Source: Oikopleura dioica (taxonomy: Eukaryota; Animalia; Chordata). From it: a stretch of DNA of 64,000 bases. The notes under the pieces are model-generated. The model saw nothing but the letters and a program-made list of their open reading frames with translations, was not told the origin of the DNA and did no database searches. Within the stretch, counting starts at the first letter, position 1. Each line of letters starts with the position of its first letter. The stretch spans positions 11,346,001-11,410,000 of the forward strand of contig OU015569.1 in the NCBI GenBank assembly GCA_907165135.1, written 5' to 3'. The position numbers and the translations under genes are program-made. Shown piece after piece: positions 668 through 60,600 of the stretch.

Positions 668-2380
668 CTATTTTTTGGACTTCTTATTCTTCTTCTTCTT
701 TCCAATTTTGAGACTTTTCTCAATGTTGGCGATGGCGGCTTCGTTAGACGTGTACTTCGCGCTCTTTCCCGGCTGAGCTTCGTCTTGCGACCATTTCATG
801 ATTTGAAACTCGAGGCCGTATTTTTCTGAACGAAGTGCTGCATTTTCCTCCATGTTCGCATGCTTCGCGAAGAGAAAAGCCGCGCGCCACTAGAAATCGA
901 GTTCATTTGAGAAACCCATTGAAATCGGCTTACCCTGTCGCGGACTGTCTTCGATTCTTGCAGCAAATAGTGCCTTACATAGTCTGGACCGTAATCGACA
1001 AAAGGCGTCATGTCGTAAGTAGGCACCCATTTGTTGATCGGCCGCTGGAATTTGCCGAGCTCGCAAGGCATCATCGTCACGTGAACGCTTAAAATTTTGG
1101 TCGTCATTTCCTGGGATTTCTTTTACCTGTCGTGGTCGCCATTGTTTCGCATAAACTCGCCCCTTTCTTGGTCAATTTCAACTTTCAAGGTTTGAAAAAT
1201 TAATTCCAACATATTTCAAGTGATTTTTCTACAATTTGAGCTACTTTTTTCAGACCAAAAACCCATAGCAGGCCATGGTAATCCTGGAGCATGAATTCCA
1301 ATCCAAACAATGGAGCCAACTGTTAGTCGAATATCCGAGTAAATCCAGTATTTTGACCCGCCCTTGATAAGTACTCTTAGAGGATTTCGCATTGACTGAT
1401 TGCTTACCGGATGGTCAGGCTTTTCCTCAGGTTTCGAGCAGTGGTTGTATTTTTTGCGGGGATCAGGGTTCATTTCGCAAATCCAGTAGTCTGGCAATAA
1501 CGCAGGGTCTTCAAATTTGATTAAGAGCAGCTCTGAAGATTTGATTTACCTGTGCATTCTTTGAGATAGCGCCACTTTTTGCACTCGACACATTCGACCC
1601 ACGTTCCTTCGGCTTGGAGAACCTCACTCTTCCACTCCTTACCATTCCAATTGCGGCCGTGGAGCTTAATTATTCCGATTCTTCGTTTCTTTTTCCCGTT
1701 GGAAGAAGAAGCATGAGACGCTGTACTGTCGTAGTTTCGGATGACGTTGGTCCTCACGACCCGAGGTGTGTTTTCTGGTTGATTCGATGGTGCAGCTGGC
1801 TCTGTTGATGTCGAGGTTGTCTCTGACCGTGTATCGCGCAAATTAGAAGCCGATTTTTTCTTGTTGTTCGCAGTTTTCATCGGCTTCGGAAGAGGGATCT
1901 CGCTGCCCTGTGTGATTGCAAATGGAATCTTGGAAAAATAGGGTGGCCGAGTTGTTTTACGAGCTCTTCTTGACCCTCTTCTTTTCGACTGCGACTCGTC
2001 ATTGCTCGTGCTTGTGCTTGGTATGTCTTCAGAATTGCTGGTTGATGGAAAAACAGGAATAGGACTTGGCAAAGCCGAAGATGGCGATTGTGACGAAGCA
2101 GCGACTGACTCTTTCGAAAGCTGACTGAAATATTCATCAGCTTTGAGAATGATGACGTCGTCCTCGTCAGAAGAGTCTCTGTGGAATCGAAGTTGACTTG
2201 TGGCTTCTTTAGTTCTGCTCTCATTTTTCAAAGTACTGGTGCTGGTTTTCTTCTTGGAAATCCGCTCTGCACCGACGAATTTAACCGGCGAAACAGCGCG
2301 AGATCCACTATCCCGGCCACTCATTCTCGAGGAGCCCCCTCGTCGAAGACGCTTTGGCTTGATGATCGTGTCTCCTGAAT
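668..2380 (-). CDS. ZCWPW1: ZCWPW1-like protein, 3' exons (zf-CW + PWWP)
   Basis: Spliced exons give WVECVECKKWRYLKECTG/DPALLPDYWICEMNPDP..YNHCSKPEE (zf-CW), then GSIVWIGIHAPGLPWPAMVEID..SVHVTM..KWVP (PWWP), ending at TAG 668. GT-AG introns join in frame. Domain order resembles ZCWPW1/2; exact paralog uncertain. Confidence 0.75.
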
Positions 2381-2689
2381 TTTTAGTTTCTCAAGTTTTT
2401 ATCCTATATCTACTGAAAACATAAATTATCTGATTAAAAATTTCAAATTTACATTGCCCGCCTAAATAATGAGTAATAACTATTTGGGGAATTTTTTAAA
2501 AATACTTGCGGGGGGCAAAAACCGTCGGAAAAAATCACTACCATTATTAATGAAAAAATTCTCATGTTCTTGAGGCTCTTGCTTTACTGATTCTCTAATT
2601 TCTGACGAGTTCATCTTCTTTATCAATATTTTCTCAGAATAAATGAGCGTTTTGGGAATTTTTTGCGTAAAACCGATTCTTGGTCCCTA

Positions 2690-7532: not shown

Positions 7533-8597
7533 TGTGGGATGACTAAGTTCGTGGGGACTAGGTTCGTGAGACTAGGTTCGTGGGTGGCTGGCTGGAAAAC
7601 GTGGTTCGTGGGACAAGGTTCGTGAGTTTTTGATTTTATATGTATATTTTTATTTATAATGATTAAGTGTTATTTATATGTATATATTTATTTATATATA
7701 TTTATATATATGTATTGTAATTATATGATCATATAATATAATATTGCTATCTAAATATAGGTTCGGGGGTTTTTGATTGGTTAGAATTTTTATTCTATAA
7801 GGAAAAAATATGTGCGACTAGGTTCGTGGGACTAGGTTCGTGGGTTTTTAATTGGTAATTATTTTTATTCTATAAGGAGAAATTATGTGCGACTAGGTTC
7901 GTGGGACTAGGTTCGTGGGTTTTGAAATTTTTTTATAAGGAAAAGGAGGGTGCGACTAGGTTCGTGGGACTAGGTTCGTGGGTTTTGAAATTTTTTTATA
8001 AGGAAAAGGAGGGTTGACTAGGTTCGTGGGACTAGGTTCGTGGGTTTTGAAATTTTTTATAAGGAAAAGTGGGATGCGACTAGGTTCGTGAGACTAGGTT
8101 CGTGGGTTTTGAAATTTTTTATAAGGAAAAGGGAGGTGCGACTAGGTTCGTGGGACTAGGTTCGTGGCTTTTAAAATTTTTTATAAGGAAAAATGGGTTG
8201 CGACTAGGTTCGTGGGACTAGGTTCGTGGGTTTCTATTCTAAGGCAACCATTGTTATTCAGCGCTAACATAGAAATTCAGTTAAAGAGCCTAGCGGCTTA
8301 TTTTGGGGGGTGGGAAAGTCATTTTTTACCATTCAACTTTACCCAATTTTACAACCCACGAACCTAGTCCCACGAACCTAGTCCCACGAACCTAGTCTCA
8401 CGAACCTAGTCTTCACGAACCTAGTCCCACGAACCTAGTCCCACGAACCTAGTCTTCACGAACCTAGTCTTCACGAACCTAGTCTTCACGAACCTAGTCC
8501 CACGAACCTAGTCGCACCCCCTTTTCCTTATAAAAAAATTTCAAAACCCACGAACCTAGTCTCACGAACCTAGTCCCCACGAACTTAGTCATCAATC
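7533..8597. mobile_element. Foldback-type element built from 14-bp GACTAGGTTCGTGG arrays
   Basis: About 47-bp terminal inverted repeats (gatgactaagttcgtggggactagg...), oppositely oriented internal arrays, ~60-bp higher-order repeats at 7815-8230, flanking direct repeat ccttcagcacg at 7522-7532 and 8598-8608. Confidence 0.85.
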
Positions 8598-15804: not shown

Positions 15805-17636
15805 GGAAGTTATACACCAGCGCAGATTCAAGAAAATTCCGAGAATGGAGCTTCAGAAACCAAGGAAGAAAATAGAAATTCGTCGAAGAAAAAAATAATC
15901 AGGAAGTGGTCTGTTCGCCATGTTTTGTAGTTCGCGAAGGTCGTAGTCGACAAATACAGCGTCCTTTGTACTCTGGACTCGTCCGAGCTGCTCTACGCGC
16001 GTTGCCAAAAATTTCCTATTTTTGCTTATTTAGTATTTATTTGCTCGCTAACCATATTTCAAAGAATCGCTGTCCTAGTCGGCTGTATCCTTGTTGGCGG
16101 AGGAGTTATCTTCTACTTTCTCAACGATGCGCGTCAGCCAATTGATCAGGGAGGAGTTGAGCCGCCGCCTGAAGAAAAGTTGAAATCAACGAAGACTTCC
16201 ATTGATGTTCCCGTCCAGCCGATTTGCAGCAGAGGCGAAGTGCTTGAGCTATGGTTAACGAATGAAACAATGTCGAATATCTTGAATTTTAGCGTTCAAA
16301 ATATCAAAATTTTCTAATTCCAAAGGACTTAGATAATGGTCTAATTATAACCTACCGTCAAAATTAAGGGTGTCACTGCGTTAATTCTGAGAAAAAAAGA
16401 TAATCGAAAAGTGTGAATGTATTTAACCAAATCAAGAGTGGACAGTGCGTATCAGCCTGCGGAGATAAATGCTTAGCAGTCGATTGCTACGTCAGTGGAA
16501 ACGGCTTGGCCATGTGCAAACACATTATCGAAAGTGGAACCAATCCACCAAAGACCTTTACGGATAAAGAATGCGACTTGGAAGGGTATGAATTGCGAAA
16601 TGGAGTTTGCAGCCCGACATGTCCGCTTGAATGCGATGGCAGCGCTTTTTGCAAATTCGACTTTCTTGGGCGACCAGTTTGCACCTGCAAGGTAGGATCA
16701 AGATTTTGGCGACTTATGTTTGGAGAAAGTTTATCTTAAAGTTGAATTAGGAAGGATACAAAATGAACGGCGGCAATTGCGAATTATTTTGCGGATTAAA
16801 CTGCGCTGAAAATGAAAAATGCGGTTATGACTGGATGGGAAAAGAGACTTGCCGACCTGTTCTTCCAGCAACAACAGAAATAACAACGACAACGGAGAAG
16901 AAATGCCAGCCAGGATATAAACTTGCTGATTCGGGCGAATGCGAATTATTCTGTGGCCTAAGCTGCGCTGATGATGAAAAATGCGCTTACGATTGGATGG
17001 GAAAAGAAACCTGCCGACCTGTTCTTCCAGCAACTGCAAAAACACCAACCACAGCGGAGAAAAAATGCCCGGCAAGATACAGACTCGCTGAATCGGGCGA
17101 GTGCGAGTTATTCTGCGGATTGATCTGCGCCGACGATGAAAAATGCGCGTACGACTGGATGGGCAAGGAAATTTGCAAAAAGGTGGAAGCGAAACCGACC
17201 TCGTACGTCCCAAGGTGCGATCTCGATTGCGGCGGCGCACTTGGTCGCTGCGTTTTTGACATGTTCGGAAAGCCGACCTGCAAGTGTAGTGAAGGCGCCG
17301 AGTACCAAAAAGATATCCAAACGTGCATCATGTAAGATTATTTCAAACTCATCAAAAATTTGATTATTTTAGCCCTGCACCCTGCTCAAAAGAATGCGAA
17401 GAAAATGAAGAATGCCAGTTTGATCTTGTTGGTCAGCAACAATGCGTTTGCAAGGGACGGCTATTGAAGAGCTACTTTTTTAGTCTTACAAAAAACATGG
17501 GCAATTTTCATAGCCGTATAAGTCTGGCTACAAAATAATCGACGACAAATGCGAGCTTTTCTGCGGCCGTGAATGCGCGGAAGGAGAGAGGTGTACTTAC
17601 GATTGGATGGGAAAGGAAATTTGTTCCAAAAAATAA
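15805..17636 (+). CDS. Type II membrane protein with tandem Cys-rich (EGF-like) modules
   Basis: TM exon RIAVLVGCILVGGGVIFYFL (from 16065), then repeated C-x-[YF]D-x2-G-x3-C modules (CGYDWMGKETC, CKFDFLGRPVC, CVFDMFGKPTC, CQFDLVGQQQC); stop TAA 17634-17636; 5' end uncertain. Confidence 0.75.
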
Positions 17637-19302: not shown

Positions 19303-19995
19303 TTAAGAGAAATCTATGTTACAGTATCGGAGAACAACATAATTTCGAAATAGAATACGCTCTTCAAACTCCTGCCGCGCGATAATATGTCACCCCAGAA
19401 AGTAATTTATCAGCTGTAGTAATCAAAGCCTCGCAAGGATGTTCGACAGTGCTTCGGCTCCAAACAGAAGTAGCGGAAGCTCAACGCAAGATTACGTAGA
19501 GTTGCCGTTTTTTGAAAAAGCGAGAGAGAGAGAAAGAGATTTGGATTATCGTGTCTCATTACGCCAAAAATTGCCACCGACGGAGGGATTTTTTACACCC
19601 TTTTTTCTCGTCTAATTAATTACCTAGCAAACTCGTGAACAAAACGAGTCGTTACGTAGAGAACGGTCACGGGATAACGCCGCCAATTCTACTTTACTTC
19701 GCTCAAGGTGTTGGTGTCGGTCGTCAAGGTAATCGAACTGTCAAAAAAAAAATCTTGAAAAGGGGAAAACGCCACTCATGTTTTGGGATTGGCCCAGTTG
19801 CATTGAAACCGCCCTGCATTGTCTACTCATTTTCTTTTTCGGAAAGAAGCGCGAGCTTGATACGGAGCTGACACACGGACAATACAACAACAAGATTAGC
19901 GAGGCATTATGGTCTTTCTATCCTATTAGATCTTTCTTGAGGATTTATTGAAGCTGGGCACGGAATTCAGCAGATTTTACTTTCACCATTTACAA

Positions 19996-20233
19996 CTGGG
20001 CTCGGCAACCTGTGGAGAAAACCTGAGTCAGGGTCTGAAAGATCTATAATGAAAAGCCGCGTAGCGGCTTTTAAAACGAAGCCGCAAAGCGGCTTCGCCA
20101 GAATTTGTCAACTTTTGAAATAATGAGTTGGTGAAGCCGCTTTGCGGCTTCGTTTTAAAAGCCGCTACGCGGCTTTTCATTATAGATCTTCCAGACCCTG
20201 ACTCAGGTTTTCTCCACAGGTTGCCGAGCCCAG
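19996..20233. mobile_element. Near-perfect palindromic MITE, copy 1
   Basis: Arms of ~100 bp starting ctgggctcggcaacctgtgg; flanks atttacaa/atttacta (8-bp TSD, 1 mismatch). Confidence 0.9.
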
Positions 20234-20980
20234 ATTTACTAATCACGCTTGAATAAAGAGATATGTATCCGATCGCCTTCGCTTTCTTTTCGTTTCTTTT
20301 TTGGCAAAGGAACCAAACACGGAATTAGTATCTCCGAGGCATTCGGCGTCACGCACGTCTGCGGGGCCGTGGCCAACGTCGCCGAGGAAAAACGCCGCCG
20401 CTTTCCAAAAATGGAAACGCCGCGTCAGATGGAAACAATCCAAGAAAGAGAGAACTCAATTTCATGAGTGGACAAATGATAACTCCTCTGGAATCTCTTC
20501 TTTTCTCGTGTGGAATAATAAATAGCTCTGGTCTTGAGTTTGTGCCCAAAAATAGTCTTTTGGAGAAAAAGTCTCAAGATCGTAAACTTATCTACTGCCT
20601 TTTTTACGTTCTTTGTTTTATGGACGAGTTACAGTAGATGCAAGTTCCGATATTATCGTCTGTGGGAGCCATGGGCGCGCGTTTGAAGTTGAAGAGTCTT
20701 AGCATTGAAGTAGCGAACTTTTGCTAATTGGGCGTAACACGCGATGAAAAAACAAAAATGAAATTCTCGAACAAGGCCAAGCCGATCTCAGGATGCAGCG
20801 ATTTGTTGACGCGAATCGTTTTAGGCAGAACATTGCTCTCTTCACACATCTGTGGCCGACATCCAGAATTAATCTCGCCGCTCATGTGAAAAAGTGGCTT
20901 ATTCATGGGAACCATGTAGCGTAATTACTGTCTCTAGACAGCTTAGTTTCTTCAGTGTGAAAATTTGGTACAGTGGCGAC

Positions 20981-21223
20981 CTGGGCTCGGCAATCTGTGT
21001 AGAAAACCTGAGTCAGGGTCTGAAAAGGCTGAAATGAAAAGCCGCGAAGCGGCTTTTTTTAAACGAAGCCGCGAAGCGGCTTCGCTAATATTCTCATTAC
21101 AATCTATGAGAAATTCTGGGGAAATAGCTTCGCGGCTTCGTTTTTGAAAAAGCCGCTTCGCGGCTTTTCATTTCAGCCTATCCAGACCCTGACTCAGGTT
21201 TTCTACACAGGTTGCCGACCCAG
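20981..21223. mobile_element. Palindromic MITE, copy 2 (internally deleted remnant at 21364-21409)
   Basis: Same family as 19996-20233; perfect 8-bp TSD gtggcgac. Confidence 0.9.
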
Positions 21224-32395: not shown

Positions 32396-35300
32396 ATGGA
32401 CTATGTTATTGACGAAAGCCTGAAATGGCAGATTGTGCTATCATATCTCTTAGTTTGTGCTCTTCTCGGCCTGATCCTCCAAATTCGCGAAACGAATCGA
32501 ATTAAATCGGAGGTAAGTTTCTCAAATTGTATACTTAAAGTCATATATTTGTCAAGTATGAAATATACCAATTCGAGATGCATAAGCGATTTATGAGCAT
32601 GCATTGGCTATTTATGAGACAAATCAAAAGACATATCGGCATGTATCGAAAGAAGATCACTGACAGAGAGGTAACAGCGATGTAACGAATACAATAATTT
32701 ATTATTATCAGTTCTCAGTATCGATATTTTCTCAAAGATAAAACTATAATTTGATTTAAATTCGATTTTGTACTTGAACAAGCGGAAAAATAAAGAGCTT
32801 CCGCGAAGCGTTGATGGTTCAATCTTTCTTTGCTTAGCTGCTTGCTAAGTTACAGTTAACTTCTGATTTGTGTTCCTGTAAAAGCGATTGAACATAAACT
32901 CTGCAACTTGTACATTTTAAGCAGGAAATATCATTAATTTAGCTTTTGGCCGCAGCTGTTACCTTTGTGCGGCTTTTTTTATTCTCTCGCTGGTTTCAAC
33001 TGTGTTCAATTTTCATAATTTATATTCTTTTTTTCGCTGCCGCCGTTGAATTGAAATTGAAAATTTGAATAGTCAATTCACGCCAAATGAAAAATGGAAA
33101 TGTCAGTTTGTCGACACTGTATTCTAAGAAACGACTTCCTCTCTGTTTTGCTTTACCTTCATTAATTTTACCGAATAATATCTTCTGAATTACCGAACTA
33201 ATTAAATTAAAGTTCGACGATTATTTTTTGGTAAAATCGAAAGCAAAGCGAAGCAAATTCTCCAAGCCTCGCTTTCTGGCGAGTTCGCTAAGCGAATCCA
33301 GATCCCTACTTTATTCATGGATTTTTAAAAATTTTAAAGATTAATTACATAAGGTTCTGGTTAAAACTGTATTGAATTTAGGAGAAGGATGAAACCGATG
33401 ATGAGTTCTTTGAGCCAGAATGGATGCCGGAAGAAGCTAAGGCCATCGAGAACGAAGAGAAAAAGGAGGAAAAGATGGAGACCACCAAAGAGAAGTACAC
33501 CGAGCTTGAAGAGCTCAGCAAGACCGAGCCCATCTGGACGCGAAATCCTAACAATATCTCCAACGAGGAGTACGCCGAGTTCTACAAGTCCCTCACCAAC
33601 GACAGGGAAGACCACCTCGCCGTCAAGCACTTCTCCGTCGAAGATCAGCTCGAGTTCCGAGCCGTTCTCTTCCTGCCCAAGCGAGCTCCCTTCGATCCCT
33701 TCTCGATCAAGCTCTACGTTCGACAAGTCTTTATCATGGACAACTGCGAGGAAATCATCCCCGAGTACCTTAATTTCGTCAAGGGTGTTGTCGACTCGGA
33801 AGATCTTCCTTTGAACATCTCTCGAGAGAATCTCCATCAGTCCAAAATCTTCAAGGTCATCCGAAAGAACCTCGTCAAGAAGTGCATCGAACTCTTCGAG
33901 GAACTCGCCGAGGACAAAGACAGCTACAAAATCTTCTACGAGCAGTTCGGTCGAAACATCAAGCTTGGCATCCACGAGGATTCCAACAACCGAACCAAGA
34001 TCGCCAAGCTCCTCCGATGGAAATCATCCTTCGATGGCGGCGAGGAGCTCACCAACCTCACAGACTACGTCAGCCGAATGAAAGATGGTCAGAAAGATAT
34101 CTACTTCATCACTGGCGAGTCTGTCGATATTGTCAAGAAATCCGCCTTTGTCGAGCGTGTGACAAAGCGAGGCTTCGAGGTTCTCTACCTGTGTGAGCCG
34201 AACGACGAGTACTGCGTCCAGCAACTCCAAGAATTCGACGGCAAGAACATCGTCTCCGTCACCAACGAGGCTCTTGAGCTCCCCGAGGATGAAGAGGAGA
34301 AGAAAAAGTTCGAGGAGACCAAGGTAATAATAATAAAGTTATAATCGCTATCCACTGTAGTCTACTTTCTTGGACTGTCTACGAGTGATAGATACATATT
34401 CTTTAGATCTTACTTACTTGGACTGTATTTTAAGAATTTTTTTAGGACACCGTGAAAACTCCTCAACGACCCACATTCCATAAAGTTAAAAAACGGCTCA
34501 TAAAAAAAACTCCTGATAACGTTCCGAACGAGAAGAAGAAACCGATAAAACATTTTATTCGAAAGAAATCAACGATGCGAGAATCACGATCAGAAACGAC
34601 CTCGACATCAACAGAGCCAGGTATTATTTATTACTCATTATTTAGGCGGGCAATGACATTTAAAATTTTAAATAAGAAAATTTATGTTTCGCGAGTAAAA
34701 AATTGAGAAACTCACTAAAGATTCAGGAGACACGATCATCAAGCCAAAGCGTCTTCGACGAGGGGGCTCCTCGAGAACGAGTGGCCGGGATAGTGGATCT
34801 CGCCCAGTTTCGCCGGTTAAATTCGTCGGTGCAAAGCGGATTTCCAAGAAGAAAAACAGCAGCAGTACTTTGAAAAATGAGAACAGAAGGAAAAAATCAA
34901 CCAGTCAACATCGATTCCACAAAGTCTCTTCTGACGAGGACGACTTCATTATTCTCAAAGCTGATGAGTATTTTAGTCAGCCTTCGAAAGAGTCAGTCGC
35001 TGCTTCGTCACAATCGCCATCTTCGCCTTCGCCAAGTCCTATTTCAGTTTTTCCATCAACCAGCAATTCTGAAAACATACCAAGCACGAGCACGAGCAAT
35101 GACGAGTCGCAGTCGAAAAAGAGAGGGTCAAGAAGAGCTCGGAAAACAACTCGGTCAGCTTCTTGTTCCAATATTCCTTTTGCAATCACACAGGGAAGCG
35201 AGATCCCCCTTCCGAAGCCTATCAAAACTACGAAAAAATCAACTTCTCATTTGCGCGAATCACGGTCAGAGACAACCTCGACATCAACAGAGCCAGCTGC

Positions 35301-35493
35301 CCCAACGAATCAACCAGAAAACGCACCTCGGGTCGTGAGAACTAACGTCATCCGAAACTACGACAGTTCAGACGAGTCCCTGAATGAGGTGAGTTTAACA
35401 GCGAACACTAAAACAGGTCCGAAGTGGGCGAAGTGGGCGATTTTCGCGAGTCTTTGTTTTCTCATTAGTTTTGGACGAAACAAAAGTCTTTGA
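32396..35493 (+). CDS. Predicted chimeric gene: TM anchor + HSP90 middle domain + ZCWPW-derived disordered tail
   Basis: Exons 32396-32512, 32587-32670, 33382-34323, 34446-34620 and 34727-35493 join by GT-AG in phases 0,0,0,1 with no stops. HSP90 identity is certain ([30 protein letters not shown]). Confidence 0.6.
33382..34323 (+). CDS. HSP90: Cytosolic HSP90-derived exon (linker + middle domain only)
   Basis: Intronless match to the HSP90 linker/middle domain; no ATPase domain and no C-terminal/MEEVD domain; ~7-aa deletion after APFD. Confidence 0.92.
34630..35365 (+). repeat. Inverted duplicate of the ZCWPW-like segment at ~1730-2470
   Basis: Same exon ([45 protein letters not shown]) plus homologous upstream intron ttattactcattatttaggcgggcaatg. 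Confidence 0.9.
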
Positions 35494-35774
35494 TATCTTT
35501 ATTTTTTTAAACTCTGCTAATTTGTTTTTTACTTCTCTGAAAATAATATAAACTTTCATTCCATCAATTCGATTGCTTTGTTTGGCTCATTTGATTCCGT
35601 CGCGCCATTCAATAATTTTGTTATTCAATTCAAGTGGACAGTAAACTGATGGTATATTTTGGCATTCTTCGATATTGTTTATTATATCAAATGTACAAAG
35701 CGGGCAAAGAAATTAAATTTTATTTTATCGTGCTCAGAAGTCGTAATTCATCCTTTGTTAGTTCTTCACGAATT

Positions 35775-37480
35775 TCAACAAATTTCTACTAAACTAAAGT
35801 TGATTTTCATTCTTCGAAACTCTTTCCTGGAGAAACGTCGATACTTGGTCCTCTCGACTGGATCGAGCTGACAGCGACTCGTAGGACTTCTTTGATTTCT
35901 TCTTTTTCGCGCAGTTGTCTTTCTTTTTCGCGTTTGATTTCGTTCTAAAGTTGAAGTCAACAATCGAATTTCCAAGCTGACGTCAAAAAAGGGAGCGATC
36001 TTTGTCCTTTTATGAGGTCAGAAAAAGATTTTCACTGTGGCAGTTTCTGAGATCGTTGTCGACAAACTTATCACACCCTGAACTTGGCAGGAAAAGCTTT
36101 CGCCATGTGATTTATCCAAAAAGACAAAAACAGCTTTTGAGCAATATTCACTGAGCAATAAAAAGACACTTCTTATCAACACCTATTTCCGTAAAATACA
36201 ACTTGGCGAAAGCCTAACTGTCGATAACTTAGAAGCATTTTCAACTCTGTGCTCTTTTTGAACTTTTTAATAGAAAGTACCTGATGCCTCGTTTTCAACT
36301 GTTCTTGTTTCATCTTCGCTTGCTGCAGCTCTTTGTGAAGACGCATATTCTCATCGAGCAATCGTTGATTCTCTTTCTCTAAGTCGCGTATTCTTGAGTC
36401 TGTTGCGCCTTCTGTGTCACATCTGAACGGAAAAATTTACGATTTGAAGACATGGAGGAGAACTTAACTTCCGAAATCTCGACTAGAGCTAGTTGTCGAG
36501 CCTCGGCGGGAGTCATTATAACTGCTACTCGGAGATAAATTTTTTAATCGAAAAGTTGAAGTTTTTCTTAATTTTGCAGCTAATTTCATTGTCTTTAATT
36601 TATTGGGACTTCATTTTTTATCTGTTCCTAGTCGAGTTAGCATTGTCGTCTCTGATTCTGGAAGTTAATTCTCGCAATTCAGCTAAACGAGCTGTCCAGT
36701 TTCTGCTCATGGATAGTGCTCCTGATAAATGAGCCGTGTGATCTGTCTTTTAAAAAGTAAACTTTTTCTGTGCGTTTTTGAGTAATTTGCGCTGGGCGAC
36801 CCCGATCTGGCGCAAATGCCCCCCGCCGTGGACTGATTACCTTTGGCCACTCCTATGCTTTTGCAAGGTGACATCTTTATTCGCATTTTCGCGGCTGCTT
36901 AGACTTTTTGGGGTTAACATTGATGATGCTCTTTCATAGTTGTAGATATCAAGAGTCACGGTTTTCTTAGAAATTTTCAATTTCAAAAGAAAGTTCTGTT
37001 GCGAAATTATCAAAGTTGCGATCACTACTTTCAATTTTCGCCATTCAAATGAACTCATAAACAACCGTTACAAAACTGAATATTTGATAACATCAGTGTC
37101 ATTTTTTAACCGTTCCTGCAAGGTATTCCAGAGTTGTTTTCTTTCAGACTTGCAATGACTCTTGTGGCAGCTGGCGAGTTCAAATAGCTATCCTTGACTC
37201 GCGCAATCACGGGCGTCCCAGCTGGAGAGCCAGTTTCGGAGCCAGAATCCAGCTCTACAAATTGCATCAAGTCCCTGTATATCATAAAGCAATTAACACT
37301 ATTTTTAAAACAAGAGGTGGTTTTGGCTCGCCTGACCTAACATTTTAACTCTTAATAAATCAGCGCGCAATTTTCATATTCGCAAATTTATTTCACTTAC
37401 CCATAATTGACACATCGTTGTGGCTCAGATAGGACTGAGTATTTGAAGCCTCATCAGCAATGTCTATTTGCTGAAATCTC
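35775..37480 (-). CDS. Multi-exon coiled-coil/basic protein, unknown
   Basis: Exons with GT-AG borders, e.g. DSRIRDLEKENQRLLDENMRLHKELQQAKMKQEQLKTRHQ; ends uncertain. Confidence 0.5.
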
Positions 37481-50603: not shown

Positions 50604-50913
50604 CGGTCTACTATATTTAGAATAATTAAAAATCATTATTGATGCGAAAACCCTTTTCTACCTGAAATGAACAATAAAACCGACAATGTTCATCACTAGA
50701 ATGTCACTAAAATCGGAAACAAAATTGTTGAATGGCGCAATAGAATCAATTGTCAATCGAGCCAATCAAAGCAACCGAATTGATGGAATGGATTCCATTC
50801 AATGGAAGTTTATTTTATTTTCAGAGAAGTAAAAAACAAATTAGCAGAGTTTATAAAAATAAAAGAAATAATTAGAAATCAAGAGTAGAAAAAGTGGGTT
50901 AAAATGTGGAAAG

Positions 50914-57602: not shown

Positions 57603-60600
57603 TCAAACAAAGCCAAAATGTTTGATTTTGAGCGTCGAAGCATTTTCGGGAGTAGGCTGGGCAGGAGGCGGCTTTCCCTTTCCATCCCCTTTTTTGCGCT
57701 CCTTCGAATTCCGAGCTGAATTTGGTATAATTGTGGCTGAATAGATCTGTTCAAGTTACCGCTTATGTGCTTCATAAATCGCTGGATTGCAGGAGGGTCA
57801 TCTTCGCTGTCAACATCTTGGTGATCGTCATGTCTCTCATCTCGACCGTCGTCTTCACCAGGGGATTCCATCATTTCATCAACTTTTTTCGACGCCTCGG
57901 ATGCCAATTCAAAGTCCTTGAATCAATGATTAATATTTTCATTTCTCATTTAGAAATGAACAACCTTGTAGTGAAGGGCCATGTGATGGATGTCGAGAAA
58001 TAGATCTTGCGCTCCAATGTCCGTGGCAAGCAAGAACGCTTTTTGTAGTCTTCTGTGGCGCAGCAAATGATGAAGAAATCTGCGTGCGTAACGAACGACG
58101 TGATCTCTGTACTCAATCACAACGAGGTCGTTGATGGCTCTCGTTGGAGCATAGAACGACGCCAAGGCAGCTTCGAGTTGTGTCTCGGTCGTGTAGTTCA
58201 ACGGCTTGACGATCAACGCGTCACAGATGGTAGTGAGGGAGGCGTAAGCGACTCCAGGACAGGGATCCGAGATTTTGTCGTCTGGACGATCGCCCACTTT
58301 TCAGGCGCGATTTGAGTTATCGCGCAGGAGCTAAAATTCTGATCGCGCGCTCAAATGCGCAGCGTTTAGGCGCGATGGCAAAAACTCGCTCTCTCGGTGA
58401 TGGGGCGATGAATTTCGATCGCGCAGCCCCATCAGGCCGACAAAAAATACTCGCGCGTTCAAATGCGCAGCGTTCAAGCGCGATGGTATAAACTCGCTCT
58501 CTCGGTGAGGGGGCGATGATTTTCGATCGCGCAGCCATATAACGCCGGATACTCACACGCTTCAAAATGGTCGAAAATCTGCCGAGCGGGAGTGCGATGG
58601 TGGCGCTTGGTTTCAATTTTGCCGACCTAGTCGGCGCACGAATCAAATGATCAGCGTGAGATTGCTGACTAAGTTGACCGATTTTTTTGAAAATGGAATT
58701 GTCCATCTCCTCATAAGAGAGCCGACAAACAAAATGTAAATTTGTACTGACCTCCCGCAACGTAACCTACAAATAAGTCGTGCTAATCGCTGAGAGTGAC
58801 TCTTGGCACCGGAAATATGCGTAAAATCTGACTATTTATCAAAAGAAAAATTTTTAAGGTAATTGGATTCTGATGTTAAGCCAACTTATGACTGAAAAAT
58901 ATATTTTTATTGGTTTTTGAACATGCAGATTTCGAAAATTTCATAAAAATTATAAATATAATGATTATAAATTATAAATAATCCAATTGGATATATTGAA
59001 ATCGCCTTATAAATGCTTTTTCTTCTTCTAATTTTGGCTATACATCACGCGCCATCGTTTAATCGTGTAGCTTACTCCAAAATGACAGTGTTTTATCGAG
59101 TATCAAGGGGTCCCCCCCATGTTGAAATTTTCATGGGCGAAAATATGGTGTCGCGCACAGCCAGGGTGGCCGAAAATAAGTTATCGCGCTCTCGGGCCCA
59201 CCGCGATGAATAATCATCGCTCCTGAAGCGCGAGGGCGCAGGGAAACCATCGGCATATTTTTGACTAATCCAGCCCGCCGATGGGAATTTTTCGCGCTGC
59301 GCGCCTAGGAGCGAAAATGATTGTCGCGCGCTGAAGAGGAGCGCTAGGTGCGCGATCGTCCAGACGACAAAATCTCGGATCCCTGCTCCAGGAGCCATGT
59401 TCCAATTAATTGAGTACAAAACTTTGATGGCTTCTTGGAAGTTGTCGTTTTTAACGTGACTTTTGACAAGCGACAGTGCTCCAGATTCCTGTCTCCCGAC
59501 AGTCAACGAGACGAGAACCAGTGGCTGGCCGAGGGAAACGACTTGTATTGGGCTTAATGTGTATAAAAGTCTTAATTATTCCATATGTTCTTTATTAAAA
59601 ATCTTTTATTAAGAATCATTGAAGCCCTAACTAGAAGTTGCTTCGACGACAGCCATTTCAGGTGTTTGAGCATAATCGTATGGGTGGAATAAACCGTGCC
59701 GCCAAGTTTGAGAACAGACTGCTTATCAGAAGATCCATTAATAGTACTCAACTCGATACAAGTAAGGCCAACGTCGAAGAACATAACCTCTCCATTGCGC
59801 GAGGAAACAGCAAGAAAATGGCTGCCCGGATGCCATGACAAAATACTCGGCCGAACTGGGAGATAAACATGCTCTGCCGAGTGTGTCTTCGTATCAAACA
59901 CAATCAGCATATTATCAGAACAGCCAAAGCAAAACTTTTCTTCGTTCGGGCTCAATTCGCACACAACAACGGAAGATTTCATTTGGATTTCGAGCTCGTC
60001 AACGATCTTCAACCCTTGGTTAAGCTTGATCGAATAGAGGGTCATGCGAATATTTGTTGGATTCACTGGGTCGGGAATCTCAAGCAGCCAGAAGGAATCT
60101 GCATTCAGCTCAGAAAAGATGACGTCTTGAATTAGGGAGTTGAAGGGAACGCGCGCGACGATTTCAGAATTTCCGGAATGAGAGATGATCATGAGATGGC
60201 CTCGAGCTCCATCTTCAATTCGCTCTGACCAGTACACCGCTGAAAACGATCCTTTCGTCCGGATACAAGCGTTGTCGGGCATGTCAACAATGTACAGCGG
60301 CTCTGGAGGAGAAATCTGCCGGTGCAAATCGGGTGGAATGACAGAAATCCGCGAGCCAGATAACAGGGAGACAACGTACTTTTCGCTCACTTGTGCGACA
60401 TCAACTGGATCGGAGGAATGCTGGATAAATTTGTCCTTCTTTGTTATATTGTCTATGTCGTTGTTGCGGAGAGAGAAACTGACCAAAGAGCCATTGGAAA
60501 ACATCATCAAAACGGAAGAGTCAAGAGGTCGCGGTAAAATAGACAAGACGCGATTTTGAGTGAGAAGGGCATTGAGTTTCTGAAGCCGATCTCGATTTTC

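Follow-up and report, generated by a model that had tools for sequence, protein, structure and literature searches.

An apparently young in-frame chimera of HSP90 and CW-finger gene pieces in the Okinawa lineage of Oikopleura dioica

The window analysed here is the 64,000-nt stretch OU015569.1:11,346,001-11,410,000 of assembly GCA_907165135.1, which belongs to the X-specific region of Oikopleura dioica OKI2018_I69. It contains a locus that joins a piece of the chromosome 2 HSP90 gene to an inverted piece of a CW-zinc-finger gene 32 kb away. Compared with both sources, the locus is a young chimera specific to the Okinawa lineage of O. dioica. An earlier note on this DNA had described five exons with GT-AG sites, matching phases and about 690 codons free of stops, and this five-part open locus is confirmed. 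Each exon is open, and the chain comprises 694 codons plus a stop, the TGA at 35491-35493. The exons were translated and searched one by one, and their phases were derived arithmetically from their lengths: 117, 84, 942, 175 and 767 nt give phases of 0/0/0/1, with the split codon G|GA. All four introns of this chain are GT-AG. In window coordinates, the exons of the five-exon chain and of the public model are:

32396..32512 (+): exon 1, 39 open codons; it contains the ATG, encodes a hydrophobic segment of 20 residues and has a GAG|gtaagt donor; the same in the public protein P0001
32557..32670 (+) in P0001, or 32587..32670 (+), 28 aa, in the five-exon chain: exon 2; either start is in frame
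33382..34323 (+): exon 3, 314 open codons; HSP90 charged linker and middle domain
34446..34620 (+): exon 4, 58 codons plus 1 nt; the same in P0001
34727..35493 (+): exon 5 of the five-exon chain, in the parental frame; 2 nt, 254 codons and the stop
35204..35345 (+): last exon of the public model g16670.t1; the C-terminus of P0001 matches the open reading frame (ORF) 35163..35345

The chimeric locus is already public as the gene model XSR g16670, a gene without a name, and a literature search finds g16670 mentioned in no paper. The NCBI protein Oidioi.mRNA.OKI2018_I69.XSR.g16670.t1 (P0001, 499 aa) contains the translation of exon 3 in full, at 100% identity. Exons 1, 3 and 4 agree between P0001 and the five-exon chain. 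In P0001, the exon 2 acceptor lies at 32556/32557, which leaves a 44-nt intron, as is usual in this species, and lengthens the protein by 10 residues. The last exon of P0001 (35204-35345) is out of the parental frame. Exon 5 of the five-exon chain runs past a strong internal donor, GAG|gtgagt at 35388/35389. The exact 3' exon of the locus, like its N-terminal membrane anchor, is an unconfirmed prediction.

Alignment of the locus to its sources and to itself delimits the captured pieces:

33447..34324 (+): stretch copied from the chromosome 2 HSP90 gene g6116 (blastn against L001 3969-4867, 90.8% identity)
34576..34620 (+): 45-nt direct duplication, 91% identical to 35252-35296 and in the same frame, ending at the CAG|gtatta donor
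34625..35373 (+): inverted copy of part of the CW-finger gene (inverted-repeat arms 92% complementary, and alignment)
1721..2482 (-): the source segment in the CW-zinc-finger gene, an intron 3' end plus an exon (inverted repeat and alignment)

The parent of the first piece is the chromosome 2 gene g6116 (P0123, 711 aa). The 878-nt piece shares 90.8% of its nucleotides and about 92% of its encoded residues with this parent, with a single 21-nt gap, and it lies wholly within one parental exon (L001 3469-4905). Exon 3 matches positions 53-359 of 518 of the Pfam HSP90 family PF00183 (E 6e-129) and aligns to residues 240-557 of human HSP90-beta. It also aligns to the crystallised middle-domain constructs 3pry and 1hk7, the latter a yeast construct of 288 residues of which 1-269 are covered, so that the charged linker and nearly the whole middle domain of HSP90 are present. 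Exon 3 had been taken as 314 residues of HSP90 linker and middle domain; the Pfam match supports this, but the homology is limited to 33447-34324, and the first 22 codons of the exon have no parental HSP90 counterpart. In the parent, the homology runs from residue ~247 to residue ~545 (...FEETK).

Both ends of the HSP90 piece are abrupt. The 5' breakpoint lies in GA-rich DNA encoding ...ENEEKKEEK, and the 3' breakpoint likewise lies in GA-rich, hinge-coding DNA. In the junction alignments, HSP90 homology stops exactly at the proposed AAG|gtaata donor of exon 3. No poly(A) follows the 3' junction, and the flanks of the piece show no homology to parental introns on either side. Retroposition and DNA copying are indistinguishable for this piece because it sits inside a single parental exon and its flanks lack parental intron homology.

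The second piece carries more of its history. It begins with about 100 nt of parental intron that includes an inherited acceptor (34625-34726) and continues with 647 nt of a Ser/Lys-rich exon. Since it contains intron sequence, this piece was copied as DNA. The copied intron part is 78% identical to its source, a comparison over 106 nt that is too short for a decisive rate comparison. For the exon part, synonymous divergence (dS) is 0.138 and nonsynonymous divergence (dN) is 0.070, a pairwise dN/dS of 0.51, with one 9-nt in-frame indel. The 45-nt duplication that ends exon 4 copies sequence 676 nt away. Exons 4 and 5 had both been assigned to the ZCWPW-like gene; an inverted copy is indeed present, but that gene accounts for no more than the final 45 nt of exon 4 and the part of exon 5 up to 35373.

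The source gene has a split CW finger at about 1430-1600, with zf-CW halves scoring 18.7 and 22.3 bits in adjacent exons, and the copy ends at 35373, before the finger. Consistent with this, a CW zinc finger is absent from the chimera, and exons 4-5 have no Pfam match. Exon-wise Pfam scans of the downstream ORFs of the source gene give no PWWP match; a GSIVW...LPWPAM motif is visible in ORF 1216-1497.

The remaining parts of the chain are orphans. For exons 1-2, a search with the first 77 residues of P0001 finds no relatives, and the window holds no second copy of them; exon 1 has no Pfam match. No source is detectable for the first 130 nt of exon 4 or for the last 40 codons of exon 5. The proposed membrane anchor accordingly has two sides: its 20-residue hydrophobic segment is present, but it is carried by a lone 39-codon orphan exon in AT-rich DNA. 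Pfam scans of the GC-richer DNA at 30.7-32.0 kb and of the DNA downstream give no matches to further captured gene fragments.

The HSP90 piece has lost features that define the family. The N-terminal GHKL/Bergerat ATP-binding domain is absent: the Pfam match begins at PF00183 position 53, and no exon has an HATPase_c match. The C-terminal dimerisation domain and the MEEVD tail are absent as well, and the exons downstream of exon 3 have no HSP90 match; the earlier note, too, had seen neither an ATPase nor a dimerisation domain. Within the middle domain, two changes stand out by position:

33604..33606 (+): Arg codon AGG in place of the invariant Trp of NDWEDH (parent TGG; human beta W312, yeast W300)
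33700..33705 (+): place where 21 nt are deleted in frame, at the cost of 7 residues from the FDLFENKKQKNS loop (human beta 345-351)

The first is the DWEDH to DREDH change noted previously, and it affects the residue that in yeast Hsp82, as W300, is a client-responsive switch Trp (PMC5902578). Other replacements, in human beta numbering, are G325D, L343P beside the lost 345-351, and R359Q. In the NISRE-x-L-Q-Q segment a Q has become H, and the Arg of the conserved NISRE is kept. With neither an ATPase nor a dimerisation domain, and with invariant residues hit at random, action of the encoded protein as an HSP90 chaperone is, judged by these features, excluded.

The age of the chimera can be bracketed from the HSP90 piece. 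With an Atlantic-type O. dioica contig (L003) and the cDNA of another appendicularian (L005) as outgroups for the direction of change, 24 non-synonymous and 23 synonymous changes fall on the copy branch, against 0 and 14 on the parental branch. So placed, the HSP90 duplication is younger than the split from the Atlantic-type lineage, and the Okinawa- and Atlantic-type lineages are dated to have separated about 25 million years ago (PMC11067885). Scaled by synonymous change, 0.08 on the parental branch against about 0.21 per lineage, the duplication would, as a rough inference, date to ~10 million years ago. A second Okinawa-type haplotype (L006, from ENA metagenomes) shows six derived sites that are common to both parents and missing from the copy; the duplication therefore predates the split of the two Okinawa-type haplotypes. 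The divergence of the CW-derived exon (dS 0.138) points to an age similar to that of the HSP90 piece.

Two side observations concern the parental gene. Over the aligned part, the HSP90 protein of L006 and of a further ENA metagenome contig, L007, matches the reference at 100%, while their DNA differs from L001 by 10.4% in non-coding and 4.2% in coding positions. This points to another deep lineage, inside the Okinawa type or next to it. The chromosome 2 HSP90 gene is directly followed by a same-strand HSP70 gene (L001:3001-8684). The same adjacency occurs in the Atlantic-type contig L003 (1501-4468), so the pairing has outlasted genome scrambling.

This anatomy suggests how the locus may have formed. 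Pieces of other genes would have been captured ectopically at one site. The first would be an 878-nt internal coding stretch of the chromosome 2 HSP90 gene, cut in two GA-rich, Glu/Lys-coding hinge regions. A 750-nt inverted stretch of the CW-finger gene, comprising an intron end and a disordered Ser/Lys-rich exon, would then be joined as the second piece, and a 45-nt local templated duplication plus filler of unknown origin would complete the mosaic. Such a patchwork would most likely reflect error-prone break repair with template switching, a mechanism proposed from the anatomy only. It is proposed because the patchwork fits a genome that lacks classical end joining and rearranges fast: O. 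dioica has lost classical non-homologous end joining, uses microhomology-mediated end joining and has had its genome scrambled at a record rate (PMC11067885).

Transposon-mediated capture was also considered and rejected, as no terminal inverted repeats flank the block and hAT terminal repeats are absent here.

Whether the assembled frame has been maintained by selection was examined by comparing the HSP90 piece with its parent. Nei-Gojobori estimates of omega, the dN/dS ratio, are 0.14 pairwise and about 0.27 on the copy branch. The earlier note had proposed this comparison; the copy-branch estimate overstates constraint because GC-rich third positions are the most mutable sites. A spectrum-matched neutral simulation, which scattered the observed substitution types randomly over the inferred ancestor, predicts 29.8 +/- 2.9 changed codons where 24 are observed (P=0.03), and omega is about 0.6 relative to that model. 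Under the same simulation, the probability that the HSP90 piece acquires no stop is 0.12, and the absence of stops together with at most 24 replacements has a joint probability of 0.007. The frame thus appears better preserved than spectrum-matched neutrality predicts; the earlier note had taken the intact frame to suggest a young functional chimera.

Indels give a similar comparison. Only two occur in ~1.5 kb of copied exon, of 21 nt and 9 nt, both multiples of 3. The non-coding DNA of the lineage has 13 indels per 130 substitutions, 10 of the 13 not being multiples of three. From this ratio, ~2-4 frameshifting indels are expected in the HSP90 piece and none is seen; the expectation is to be read with the caveat that coding-like DNA has fewer homopolymers than introns and hence a lower neutral indel rate.

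Taken in aggregate, the data support a young in-frame mosaic whose HSP90 piece comes from the chromosome 2 gene and whose inverted tail comes from the CW-finger gene, and in this respect the previous description stands; its interpretation as a whole is partly supported. With about an even chance of being right, the locus may be a weakly constrained young protein-coding gene, in which selection acts mainly on the open frame, non-synonymous change stands at about half the neutral level and the HSP90 middle domain is a drifting passenger or scaffold. The principal rival, somewhat short of an even chance, is a non-functional mosaic pseudogene: debris of break repair that is still open through youth, with exons 1-2 and 4 invented by gene prediction or by a human reader to join two open fragments.

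Several observations weigh against the weakly constrained gene, favour the pseudogene, or do both. The replacements are spread at random with respect to conservation: of the 24, 21 are at columns with a conservation of 95% or more across 80 HSP90s, a class that makes up 82% of all columns, and mean column conservation is 0.951 for replaced positions against 0.952 for all, so that invariant columns were struck at the background rate. Nor are the replacements more conservative than neutral ones; their mean BLOSUM62 score is 0.12, against a neutral expectation of 0.00 +/- 0.28 (P=0.33). G>A or C>T accounts for 28 of the 47 changes on the copy branch, a spectrum that is eroding the parental codon bias. 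The locus was chosen for its open frame, which inflates any P value based on the ORF; given an open frame, the nonsynonymous-to-synonymous ratio (N:S) alone gives P of about 0.06. Openness of the CW-derived exon is uninformative and expected by chance, with a probability of no stop of about 0.2-0.5 under neutrality.

The gene structure raises further doubt about the weakly constrained gene. Gene models of OKI2018_I69 were built by AUGUSTUS with RNA-seq hints (PMC8008620), and P0001, as such a model, differs from the five-exon chain at intron 1 and intron 4. Exons 1-2 are orphans, and every donor is placed exactly on a patch junction.

Related transcripts and proteins were likewise not found elsewhere. 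The copy-specific deletion junction has 0 matches among JGI metagenome and metatranscriptome contigs, by an exact and by a degenerate scan; this is weak evidence in that only abundant transcripts assemble there. The abundant mRNAs of this lineage are represented in the collection, as it holds an intron-less Okinawa-type HSP90 cDNA contig (P0122). When exon 3 was compared with the 173-550 aa candidates visible to the protein search, the best matches beyond the public model were true HSP90s of at most 90% identity, and no other candidate exceeded 91%. Okinawa RNA-seq assemblies appear to be missing from the protein collection, in which the parent P0123 has no Logan source, and absence from it therefore says little.

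The points against a pseudogene are those that favour a maintained frame: the joint P of 0.007, and the missing frameshifts in the HSP90 piece. The distribution of changes along the piece speaks for both sides. In segments picked after seeing the data, N:S is 11:2 in compared codons 0-92, as debris might show, 6:17 in compared codons 93-229, which argues against debris, and 7:4 in compared codons 230-291. The compact O. dioica genome is not known for keeping old junk, a further point against the pseudogene.

A bolder form of the coding interpretation is unlikely. It holds that break repair, in a genome lacking classical end joining, excised a complete, foldable HSP90 middle domain at hinge repeats and fused it to a membrane anchor and a disordered tail, which would make an X-linked, lineage-specific gene under selection whose product is a non-chaperone middle-domain protein such as a tethered scaffold or a co-chaperone sink. 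Were this so, the locus would be an example, dated to about 10 million years or less, of a new gene made by genome scrambling.

Less probable still is the proposal that a membrane-tethered HSP90 middle domain faces the cytosol and holds clients, or titrates co-chaperones such as Aha1. This proposal agrees with the more positive charge on the C-terminal flank of the hydrophobic segment in exon 1, the middle domain is near-complete and independently foldable by its match to 1hk7, and the NISRE Arg is retained. Against these stand the replacement of the client-responsive Trp by Arg (PMC5902578), the neighbouring loop short of 7 residues with a new Pro, the Q to H change in the NISRE-x-L-Q-Q segment, and the missing sign of HSP90-type constraint. 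The anchor exon is an unsupported orphan, and the 711-nt intron between the anchor part and exon 3 is long for this genome. Because the supposed client-contact features are destroyed and the anchor exon is unsupported, the holdase or co-chaperone decoy put forward in the earlier note is the least supported reading.

It is very improbable that expression is confined to the HSP90 piece, in the form of an unspliced ORF (ATG 33424 to TAA 34344, 306 aa) or a non-coding transcript, with the CW-derived piece as unrelated neighbouring debris: the frame 33424..34344 is complete from ATG to stop and needs no splicing, and trans-splicing, which this species uses, might take the AG at 33380-33381 as its acceptor, but an out-of-frame ATG at 33389 precedes the in-frame one.

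The window has other features of its own. A ~150-nt interspersed repeat occurs at 35498-35645, starting right past the exon 5 stop codon, and at 50718-50863 (-), the two copies being about 79% identical. Between the chimera and an RRM gene, an unannotated minus-strand ORF at 36176-36361 (surroundings 35800-37300) encodes a coiled-coil-like sequence (...RLHKELQQAKMKQEQLKTRHQ...) with no Pfam match. A hAT-like element has 38-nt terminal inverted repeats, 97% complementary, at 58260-58297 and 59348-59385, with no further copy of a terminus in the window. At 19991-20238 and 20981-21221 lie two near-palindromic elements of about 230-250 nt, with ~75-110-nt arms that are 93-96% complementary; they are about 88-90% identical to each other and, ~1 kb apart, look like a pair of miniature inverted-repeat transposable elements or foldback elements. 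Tandem 162-nt coding repeats at 16772-17624, 80-83% identical, encode the Cys-rich module GxCELFCGLxCAxxEKCxYDWMGKExC and probably belong to a repeat-domain secreted protein. A tandem array of 62-75-nt repeats occupies 7758-8586, with an inverted copy of the unit at 8487-8586.

O. dioica has the fastest genome rearrangement known in any animal. Should the locus prove to be expressed and constrained, it would be a concrete, datable case in which such rearrangement shuffled exons of a core chaperone, with domain precision, into a new protein-coding gene. Without expression it would serve as a caution, since an "HSP90"-domain gene model in the public annotation of this assembly would then be a by-product of repair. 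Either way, the g16670 protein is not to be counted as an HSP90 paralogue.

With cytosolic HSP90 (O. dioica g6116, human HSP90-beta, yeast Hsp82) the chimera shares the charged linker and the middle domain. It differs in having no N-terminal ATPase, dimerisation domain or MEEVD, in carrying W312R, G325D, L343P with the 345-351 deletion, and R359Q, and in the lost constraint on invariant residues.

Young chimeric genes made from pieces of existing genes include jingwei and Sdic of Drosophila and the Pack-MULE and Helitron fragment chimeras of plants. In these, as here, unrelated parental fragments are fused in frame at a new site, and the result is lineage-specific with a raised dN/dS. The O. 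dioica locus, a candidate gene, differs in showing neither visible hallmarks of retroposition nor flanking transposon ends. Fragments of HSP90 also occur in the mammalian HSP90AA/AB pseudogene families, which likewise hold partial ectopic copies of a very highly expressed chaperone gene with decaying codon bias. Here, in contrast, the frame is intact after about 5% divergence on the copy branch, the indel in the HSP90 piece is in frame, the piece is joined in frame to an exon of another gene, and the whole is annotated as coding.

A further counterpart is microhomology-mediated end joining with templated insertions and patchwork repair, as summarised for O. dioica in PMC11067885 (citing Deng et al. 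2018). There as here, short and long ectopic pieces lie side by side and breakpoints fall in repetitive, purine-rich DNA, but at 878 and 750 nt the present pieces greatly exceed the usual length of templated insertions.

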